Origin: Tubulanus polymorphus
Taxonomy: Eukaryota > Animalia > Nemertea
Direction: 5' to 3'
DNA length: 64,000 bases
Assembly: GCF_964204645.1 (NCBI RefSeq)
Contig: NC_134030.1
Coordinates: 1,781,355-1,845,354, forward strand
Below, piece by piece: positions 57,201-59,490 of the stretch. A program made the translations under genes and the position numbers. A model generated the notes under the pieces. It made no database searches, was not told the DNA's origin, and saw only the letters and a list, made by a program, of their open reading frames with translations. Position 1 is the stretch's first letter; each line of letters starts with the position of its first letter.

Positions 57201-59490
57201 CTACTGTGAACAGGGTTCAGAACTGTGGAACTAGATCCTGAATTGTCGATACAAATTAAACTTACACAAGATAATAATTCCACCGAGGATCATCGGTATC
57301 GATGTATGAAGCTGCGTCTATATAAAACAGAATAAAGGGTTCCAGATGACTGTGGAACTCTCTGAATCCACGTTCATCCACATCCGTTTTATAAATCTCG
57401 AATTTACGAGTGTCAATTTCATCTGAAAAATATAGAAATCGTTTCGATGTAGCTAACTGCACAGGACTTTTTGGTTCTATAAGACCAGTCTATTTAAGTA
57501 TTGATTGACTATGTAATAAGCCCTAAGCCTCCAAACCTTCATTAACTGTATAAGAATGTATCAATTCTCCGAATGGTCGGAATTTTTTCTCTTTCTCGAA
57601 TTCTTTCACAAACTCGTCGATGTTTGTGTGATAACCCGGCGGTAACTTCTCTGTCAAAAGCGGCATTACATCATCAGCCTTTATAACAAAATATAAACCA
57701 TTCAAAATATCGTCAATTCAACCAGCTTTCAAGGACTTAAGATTAGCTTTTACCAGCTTTTACAGACTTTAGATTCAGTTTCTTGATATCATACCAGCTT
57801 TTCATCCAGTTTGATGAAATCGTACATTTTTTTATGATTTCCGCGTTAATTCAGTTTATCGCAAATCAATTCAAAAGTTTCATGAAAAGATTTCAACTCT
57901 ATTTGAGTTTGAGTTCAAATCTATTTGATTTCTTCATTAATTCAGATCAGTTGATTTCAGAGTTGATTCTTTTAACGAATTTGGAATCCCTTGATTCACT
58001 ACTCTGGTTAAAACGTGTCAACAATATGAATAAAAATTTTATTGATTTACTTACGTGAACTCCGTCGAATTTTTTCGGCGATATTTTATCGAGATATTTG
58101 ATATTTAGAAAAGTTTTCAAACTTCCCGCCGTACAAAACATTTCTATCTGTAAATCTCGATATCCGAATATACTTTCACTGTAACACAAATAAACAAAAG
58201 ATATTAAATGAAGTTTTATCAACATGACTCATAAAGTCTGACGACATAGAATGCAGTTCAATATTACGATTGATAGAACACTATATCCGTGTTGACTCGA
58301 TGTAAGGGGGAATCCCACAATTATAACGAAAAAGTCCGAAAATGAAACTTCGAGATAGTAGTTTATTTCAACGTTTCGACTATATCCTAATAGTCATCTT
58401 CAGGAATACTGTATTCCTTGAGCTAGTGTAGTTTATTCAACGTTTCGACTATATCCTAATAGTCATCTTCAGGAATACTGTATTCCTTGAGCTAGTGTAG
58501 TTTATTCAACGTTTCGACTTTATCCTAATAGTCATCTTCAGGAATACTGTATTCCTTGAGCTAGTGTAGTTTGTTCAACGTTTCGACTATATCCTAATAG
58601 TCATCTTCAGGAATACTGTATTCCTTGAGCTAGTGTAGTTTATTCAACGTTTCGACTATATCCTAATAGTCATCTTCAGGAATACTGTATTCCTTGAGCT
58701 AGTGTAGTTTATTCAACGTTTCGACTATATCCTAATAGTCATCTTCAGGAATACTGTATTCCTTGAGCTAGTGTAGTTTATTCAACGTTTCGACTATATC
58801 CTAATAGTCATCTTCAGGAATACTGTATTCCTTGAGCTAGTGTTGTTTATTCAGCGTTTCGACTATACCCTAATAGTCATCTTCAGGAATACTGTATTCC
58901 TTGAGCTAGTGTAGTTTATTCAACGTTTCGACTATATCCTAATAGTCATCTTCAGGAATAATGTATTCCTTGAGCTAGTGTAGTTTATTCAACGTTTCGA
59001 CTATATCCTAATAGTCATCTTCAGGAATACTGTATTACTTGAGCTAGTGTAGTTTATTCAACGTTTCGACTATATCCTAATAGTCATCTTCAGGAATACT
59101 GTATTCCTTAAGCAAGTGTAGTTTATTCAACGTTTCGACTTTATCCTAATAGTCATCTTCAGGAATAAGGCAGGCAGTCCAATATCGATTAATGCTTAAT
59201 CAATTTTGATATCTTGATATAAATTATGTTTCTGTTTCGATATTTAACTTACTTTTCACCGAATACCTGATGACTCATCACTGGACTAAACGATATATCA
59301 TCATTTTCTAAATCTGCTTGTTCGCGAACTGTAAAATCAGAAAAAAAAACATTTGGAAACAAAAAAATTTCTGAAGCCGAAGGAAAAGAATTAGCCATTT
59401 TAGAAACAGATGACTCTTACCCAATTTAAAAACTAATGCATCGTTTGAGTCACATTTGTATTGTTCCAATTTATCTTTTAATAACGACAT
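54215..59490 (-). CDS. HAT1: Histone acetyltransferase type B catalytic subunit
   Basis: Exons 59421-59490, 59253-59328, 58055-58178, 57537-57678, 57266-57422, 56021-56232, 55399-55550, 55055-55171, 54215-54385. [81 protein letters not shown]. An extra upstream coding exon cannot be excluded (acceptor near 59506). Confidence 0.96.
54415..54872. repeat. Polypurine GA-rich compound repeat
   Basis: ~450 bp of nearly pure G/A with a recurring GAGAGGAGGG(T/C)GAGAGGGACGAAGG unit, directly upstream of the last HAT1 acceptor. Confidence 0.9.
56410..57240. repeat. Complex GAACTG-based satellite derived from the MITE family A TIR
   Basis: GAACTGTGGAACTGAGTCCT sub-units arranged in repeating higher-order blocks. 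Confidence 0.9.
58358..59167 (-). ncRNA. Tandem array of 12 minimal type I hammerhead ribozyme motifs (69-nt unit)
   Basis: Minus-strand unit TATTC-CTGAAGA-T-GACTAT-TAGGAT-ATAGTC-GAAAC-GTT-GAATA: conserved core, 6-bp stem II, palindromic ACGT stem III, 5-bp stem I. Period 69 (58381, 58450 ... 59140). Confidence 0.75.

Follow-up and report, generated by a model that had tools for sequence, protein, structure and literature searches.

The minimal hammerhead ribozymes of Penelope-like elements (PLEs) lie in the pseudo-long terminal repeats (pLTRs) and are recognised by a G10.1-C11.1 pair, a palindromic segment at positions 15.2-16.2, a long helix II and a short helix I (Cervera and de la Pena, 2014; PMC4209133). 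In vitro they cleave poorly even as dimers (PMC4209133; PMC6765202), and in an Anolis PLE cleavage is dispensable for insertion, with no RNA-seq ends at the cleavage site (PMC11167929). Retrozymes, whose consensus lengths span 51-972 bp and whose multimers concentrate at chromosome ends, have been assigned an origin in PLE pLTRs (Li et al., 2026; bioRxiv 10.64898/2026.07.22.740005). Here we describe a related locus from the nemertean Tubulanus polymorphus, a 69-bp tandem repeat within the gene HAT1, on a stretch of 64,000 nucleotides of contig NC_134030.1 (positions 1,781,355 to 1,845,354; this whole stretch is called the window, and positions are counted from its first letter). We hold, with a probability of roughly 85%, that a PLE gave rise to the array, a non-autonomous and retrozyme-like derivative that was retrotransposed in the sense orientation into coding intron 2 of HAT1.

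The array in HAT1 intron 2

The repeat forms one tandem array with a period of 69, 11.7 copies, 97% matches and no indels. On the minus strand its unit reads UAUUC-CUGAAGA-U-GACUAU-UAGGAU-AUAGUC-GAAAC-GUU-GAAUA and then a linker, so that each 69-nt unit consists of a hammerhead motif of 44 nt and a linker of 25 nt. Twelve CUGAAGA cores are found in the array, with first bases at 59162, 59093, 59024, 58955, 58886, 58817, 58748, 58679, 58610, 58541, 58472 and 58403, and we name the units by these positions. The catalytic boxes CUGAAGA and GAAA (C3-U-G-A-N-G-A9 and G12-A-A14) are present in all 12 units. An unpaired U between A9 and G10.1, followed by the 6-bp helix II GACUAU/AUAGUC, is present in 10/12, and A15.1-U16.1 with the palindromic ACGU, followed by U17 (GUU), in 11/12, the remaining unit having GCU. 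Helix I (UAUUC/GAAUA) is intact in 10 of the 12 and weakened in 58610 and 58403. The representative intact unit listed in Table 1 contains stem I, CUGAAGA, the bulged U, helix II, GAAA and the palindromic ACGU, with cleavage predicted after GUU.

A strict minimal-hammerhead descriptor was passed by 9/12 units. It calls for both boxes, for helices I and II of 4 bp or more each, for a palindrome in the helix III segment and for a U-H site, and it allows an optional bulge. The same descriptor gave a mean of 0.005 matches on 200 dinucleotide shuffles of the whole 64-kb window. The three failing units are 58886, in which GCU replaces GUU (U16.1 to C) and loop 2 and the linker are also altered; 58610, with a stem I mismatch (GAACA); and 58403, the last unit, with a 1-nt insertion within stem I (GAAAUA). 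In units 59162 and 58541 helix II is reduced to 4 bp by an A.A mismatch. The original prediction, made from the letters alone, had described this 69-bp hammerhead-type repeat at 58358-59167 with the same period and minus-strand sequence, and its count of one GCU unit and two stem II mismatches stands, while the stem I defects of 58610 and 58403 were missing from its list.

HAT1 is encoded on the minus strand, and the array lies in the sense orientation within its second coding intron. The minus-strand exons downstream of the array match Pfam Hat1_N (E 3e-8 and 1e-6), and the exon frames beside the array read as HAT1 N-terminal sequence, the exons having been looked at singly rather than as one spliced model. 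These matches and the intron boundaries bear out the sense placement that had been claimed. About 900 nt of the intron are insertion, and the empty intron would measure roughly 130-150 nt. No open reading frame (ORF) of at least 35 aa in the ORF list overlaps the array, which is therefore non-autonomous. Eleven AAUAAA hexamers, arising from GUU-GAAUAAAC, also lie in the sense orientation inside the intron and are potential intronic polyadenylation signals.

Identity of the motif

By their sequence, the array units are Penelope-type minimal type I hammerhead motifs, neither a chance match nor a new class. Every feature of PLE minimal hammerheads listed by Cervera and de la Pena (2014; PMC4209133) is found here. 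The original description of the motif is upheld: it belongs to the minimal type I hammerheads, its palindromic ACGU helix III has no loop, and one extra base separates A9 from G10.1. A covariance model (R1) built from non-A-type motifs only matched 12/12 window units with 50.5-55.8 bits (E about 1e-13 to 1e-14). Because this model omits all A-type sequences, it provides a non-circular test of the motif.

Genome-wide copy counts were made by pattern search of the 268-Mb genome. A 39-nt core with up to 3 mismatches gave 2,520 matches against 0 for a reversed control, and many of these form pairs, either direct with a spacing of exactly 2857 bp or inverted and facing each other. A CUGAUGA-type motif pattern gave 590 matches against 0 for the control, with many helix II variants. 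To measure covariation, 28 motifs were aligned, chosen for diversity from the first 100 listed matches of a search pattern that fixed the core boxes; 77% of cells were paired under the a priori hammerhead structure, compared to 22-48% with slid partners. Both sides had changed in 10/12 pairs, and the score was reached by 0/500 shuffles. Covariation was absent inside the 69-bp family itself. The original prediction had named a lack of stem covariation among genomic copies as an argument that would count against it; since the stems covary among PLE families, this argument falls away.

Autonomous Penelope-like elements in the genome

Elsewhere in the genome, at a locus that we call L032, direct hammerhead copies at 2498 and 5355, which are 2857 bp apart, flank an 802-aa ORF with RVT_1 (E 5.8e-10) and GIY-YIG (E 1.5e-5) domains. 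The predicted element has the architecture of an autonomous PLE of 2.86 kb with pLTRs, the same hammerhead being present in both terminal repeats. The window copy lacks this architecture, as an array without an ORF of at least 35 aa, while its L032 partner has it. At least 13 intact copies of the L032-type PLE share 99-100% protein identity, which suggests recent activity, and 359 PLE-type upstream junctions are found in the genome. The genome search for autonomous Penelope elements with reverse transcriptase (RT) and GIY-YIG domains that carry the motif, which had been proposed with the prediction, thus finds them.

The repeats that flank two further PLE families, whose proteins are 68% and 59% identical, also contain hammerheads, and in the 68% family the hammerhead occupies the equivalent pLTR position relative to the ORF. 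The motifs of the 68% and 59% families read CGC-CUGAUGA-U-GGCUAA..UUAGCC-GAAACGUU-GCG and CCAC-CUGAUGA-U-GGCUGUU..AACAGCC-GAAACGUU-GUGG. All three PLE families keep the core, the bulged U and ACGU, and their helices differ with compensating changes.

Inverted partial hammerhead copies often border PLE and array copies, as at L032 5491-5560 and in the 5′ flanks of the arrays at L025 and L039, an arrangement, head to head, that is familiar from Penelope insertions. CCTGTATTC is common to several array 5′ ends.

Origin of the 69-bp unit

Array-type unit junctions number 1,393 genome-wide, dispersed over many arrays, and the sampled 69-bp arrays hold 3-22 units each. Among the matches listed, most arrays are no more than about 1-2 Mb away from a contig end; contig C6, which is 23 Mb long, begins 1.8 Mb before the window. 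No telomere repeats were seen in the last 700 bases beside an array at the end of contig C3.

In most other 69-bp arrays the linker runs on into the terminal tail. An L039-derived pattern, whose first 22 letters are identical to the array linker, showed this tail to recur every 167 bp on C8 and C6. The 167-bp unit comprises the hammerhead, the whole pLTR segment to the PLE 3′ end and about a dozen bases. The 69-bp unit corresponds to the first 63 nt of the 167-bp unit joined to its last 6 nt, and is therefore, as read from this junction, an internal deletion derivative of the 167-bp repeat. With the 2857-bp PLE, the 167-bp and the 69-bp forms all present, the genome holds a graded series. One 167-bp tandem repeat lies at L084 605-2417 (G000:C8:371500-374500; 10.9 copies, 98%) and another at G000:C6:22640784-22641151. 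All units of the L084 array have G in place of C11.1 and thereby lack the G10.1-C11.1 pair.

Position 27 of the unit is T or A, where A produces the helix II A.A mismatch, and this polymorphism is interspersed in nearly every sampled array. A was found in 49/112 units (the window array and L007, L023, L025, L028 and L037-L040), and the window array has the pattern ATTTTTTTTATT. The T27/A27 mix common to the arrays points to descent from heterogeneous multimers or to exchange among arrays. Rolling-circle copying of one 69-nt circle was considered as the origin of the array and rejected on account of this shared mosaic.

The HAT1 copy as an insertion

The last unit is followed by a PLE-type 3′ tail, which is homologous to the pLTR of the autonomous PLE from the hammerhead to the 3′ end, its first 29 nt being identical. 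The array and tail are framed by ATTAATCG--ATATTGGACTGC (59193-59174) and ATCAATCGTAATATTGAACTGC (58274-58253), which a local alignment of the flanks matches at 18/20 positions with a 2-nt indel. This points to a probable 20-bp target-site duplication around the array and tail, and the PLE-type tail together with this duplication argues that the HAT1 copy arrived by retrotransposition. The coordinates of these features are collected in Table 1.

Table 1. Features of the HAT1 locus, in window positions.
Feature	Position	Strand	Evidence and remarks
HAT1 coding intron 2, 1074 nt	58179..59252	-	GT 59252-59251, AG 58180-58179, flanking exon frames, Hat1_N
Tandem array of 12 minimal hammerhead units, 69-bp period	58358..59167	-	Tandem Repeats Finder, cores, covariance model
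Representative intact unit with 8-nt flanks	58707..58756	-	Passes strict descriptor; 55.8 bits with model R1
Defective unit, GCU for GUU	58848..58891	-	Sequence; fails strict descriptor
PLE-type 3′ tail after the last unit, 87 nt	58271..58357	-	Alignment with L032 pLTRs
Probable target-site duplication, upstream copy ATTAATCGATATTGGACTGC	59174..59193	-	Flank alignment; 6 extra nt, then first unit
Probable target-site duplication, downstream copy	58253..58274	-	Flank alignment; overlaps last 4 nt of tail

Proposed mechanism and role in HAT1

Target-primed reverse transcription of a multimeric RNA would account for the layout of target-site duplication, units and PLE tail. Under such a mechanism, multimeric RNA from another array would have been reverse-transcribed at a nicked target by the PLE RT and endonuclease. 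In the HAT1 pre-mRNA, adjacent units could then pair through the palindromic ACGU into double hammerheads and be cut after GUU.

Self-cleavage of the HAT1 pre-mRNA is possible in principle and probably weak. In fold predictions, the linker within the array forms a 7-bp hairpin, AGGAAUA-CAG-UAUUCCU (-4.7 kcal/mol), which was made by the deletion junction and pairs C3/U4, while the stem I duplex alone contributes about -1.1 kcal/mol. A trimer forced into one hammerhead reaches -40 kcal/mol against a minimum free energy (MFE) of -52 kcal/mol, 12 above it, and in the bare 46-nt motif stems I and II do form in the MFE structure. Cleavage is thus predicted to be weak because the linker hairpin captures the stem I strand together with C3/U4, because stem I consists of five A-U-rich pairs, because loop-loop contacts are absent, and because the published PLE minimal hammerheads cleave so poorly. 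Given this prediction, the array is at present most likely a tolerated selfish insertion that is removed by splicing and not a regulator of HAT1.

Weighing the alternatives

Several observations weigh against a retrotransposed PLE derivative. Rfam searches of the window at gathering score, and of 58300-59250 (951 nt) with E values up to 10 allowed, gave no hammerhead match; the only rows obtained, MIR2863 (E about 9) and a group I intron (E 1-2), were judged repeat noise. The likely cause of this blank is the loopless helix III together with the bulge, the models expecting a closed helix III. The Rfam search proposed with the prediction therefore did not succeed as framed, while the independent covariance model of other PLE families recovered every unit. 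The tail is identical to that of the active PLE in only 78/94 aligned columns and is not of the type that ends other 69-bp arrays; the HAT1 copy combines a PLE-A type tail with linkers of the 167-bp-family type. Its source may be an unsampled subfamily or a template switch. The score of the target-site duplication was reached by 15/2000 flank shuffles and is only moderately significant alone. Of the sampled units, 44% carry an uncompensated A.A mismatch in helix II, and C11.1 is lost in about 10%. Across 112 array-family units, conservation in the helices does not exceed that in the linker (odds ratio 1.05 if position 27 is left out), and counting position 27 makes the helices 2.4 times more variable. 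In addition, the array may have expanded at the DNA level after insertion. Only the core of the array family is slightly less variable, with an odds ratio of 0.42 (p 0.035) for units that are not independent.

On an explanation purely at the DNA level, the intron first received a short 3′ piece of a PLE, carrying a single unit or a few, and the 69-bp unit then multiplied in place by unequal exchange or replication slippage, the hammerhead being a passenger without an RNA role. Such a satellite would account for the high identity within the array, for inactivating variants that are common and uncompensated, for the intermixing of 167-bp and 69-bp units at the same loci, and for the enrichment of arrays near chromosome ends, as for ordinary satellites, among the matches listed. 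The identical unit junction at so many unlinked loci, however, indicates that the unit arose elsewhere. In the window array, two units are of the A27 variant that is common genome-wide, and the array was thus heterogeneous on arrival or has exchanged with other arrays. The tail and target-site duplication, moreover, frame the array as a whole. We consider growth from a short fragment unlikely on this balance.

A further possibility, close to what the original prediction proposed, is an active micro-retrozyme. Multimers transcribed with HAT1 would self-cleave as double hammerheads into 69-nt monomers, the ligated circles would serve as rolling-circle templates for the PLE RT, and HAT1 mRNA would be lowered or modulated. 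The completeness of the motif in 9/12 units is consistent with this, as are the tandem layout, which permits the dimer required by loopless hammerheads (PMC4209133), and the folding of stems I and II in the bare motif. So are the dispersal of the arrays, their variable copy number and their PLE tails; the retrozyme model also predicts more-than-unit cDNAs (PMC7761336). Against it, the linker hairpin is predicted to sequester stem I and C3/U4 and the enforced trimer is unfavourable, and the helices carry no signal of selection. All arrays, that of the window included, are T27/A27 mosaics, which calls for a heterogeneous multimer as template rather than one circle. The published in vitro and Anolis results cited above also speak against an active element, and an efficient sense cutter in an essential-looking gene should face counter-selection. 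An active element of this kind is accordingly doubtful. Its fuller form is more doubtful still: here the 69-nt unit would be a working retrozyme, among the shortest, that is transcribed by host genes such as HAT1 and released by double hammerheads as circularised 69-nt RNAs, with the linker hairpin as a switch that blocks re-cleavage and the resident PLE mobilising the RNA in trans through the 3′ tail.

Chance resemblance of an AT-rich repeat with CUGANGA and GAAA boxes, for which only the missing Rfam match speaks, is ruled out for practical purposes by the 0.005 descriptor matches expected per shuffled window against 9 found, by the presence of the motif, with stem changes that compensate each other, in pLTRs of three PLE families, and by the independent covariance model (E about 1e-14).

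Neighbouring features of the window

Three more solitary, decayed PLE-type hammerhead relics were found in the window with model R1, all on the minus strand. The relic at 63202-63247 (52.7 bits), in a furin-like gene region, is of family-C type and its helix II is shortened; the others are at 27139-27188 (38.8 bits) and 15636-15685 (31.7 bits), the latter following on the end of a 167-type tail. About 70 kb before the window start (G000:C6:1709536-1711941) there is a full-length member of the active PLE family, with 100% protein identity over 802 aa and one in-frame TAG.

A second, unrelated and degenerate tandem repeat was resolved by Tandem Repeats Finder at 57000-57246, with units of 12-93 bp built on GAACTGAGTCC. 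It occupies much of the next HAT1 intron and gives rise to spurious long repetitive minus-strand ORFs at 56488-57283.

Comparison with known systems

The original prediction had placed the 69-nt unit below the size of metazoan retrozyme monomers (roughly 150-300 nt). Its length in fact falls within the published range of 51-972 bp, the parent 167-bp repeat is of ordinary retrozyme size, and a PLE-pLTR origin has already been published for Xenopus (Li et al., 2026). What this genome adds is a series within one species, from the 2.86-kb PLE through the 167-bp repeat to the 69-bp derivative, all with the same minimal hammerhead and with arrays that keep the PLE tail. The series supports the recent view of animal retrozyme-like repeats as non-autonomous PLE derivatives and names a likely helper element.

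The closest likeness is to the minimal hammerheads of PLE pLTRs (PMC4209133; Lunse et al., 2017, as summarised in PMC6765202). Both have the two catalytic boxes, an open palindromic helix III, the G10.1-C11.1 pair, a long helix II (6 bp here) and a short helix I (5 bp here), and both lie in the terminal repeats of elements with RT and GIY-YIG domains, as direct pairs about 3 kb apart with nearby inverted pairs. Here, however, the motif is also amplified as a 69-bp head-to-tail repeat detached from the coding element, and the copies of the family differ very little from one another, as has been reported for D. virilis, instead of varying strongly.

With the animal non-LTR retrozymes (Cervera and de la Pena, 2020; PMC7229834; Li, Clavereau and Pollet, 2026) the arrays share non-coding head-to-tail repeats with a type I hammerhead in each unit, dispersed arrays of variable copy number, multimers at chromosome ends, a relationship to PLE pLTRs and the co-occurrence of autonomous PLEs. 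Classical retrozymes are 150-450 bp long and have canonical hammerheads with loop-loop contacts, efficient cleavage and abundant circular RNAs (PMC7229834; PMC7761336), whereas the present repeat is 69 bp long and has only the minimal motif. A canonical hammerhead with loop 1-loop 2 contacts was not found in the unit: loop 1 is the 25-nt linker, whose hairpin competes with stem I. In contrast to the retrozymes reviewed in PMC7761336, the arrays also bear a recognisable PLE 3′ tail that identifies the likely helper.

The double hammerhead of newt satellite 2 (Forster et al., 1988, as summarised in PMC4209133 and PMC6765202) is similar in its weak or absent helix III and palindromic centre, and in that two tandem copies must pair. 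Its units, in these summaries, are about 330 bp long and are transcribed and processed, while those described here are 69 bp long. Amniote intronic hammerheads (de la Pena & Garcia-Robles, 2010, as summarised in PMC7229834) likewise place a sense motif in an intron of a protein-coding gene. According to that summary they are single, canonical and ultraconserved, whereas the HAT1 array is a recent multi-copy transposon insertion without evidence of conservation. For HAT1 itself it is most likely a tolerated insertion, and as a sense copy in the intron of a conserved gene it offers a natural test of whether a minimal hammerhead cuts in vivo.

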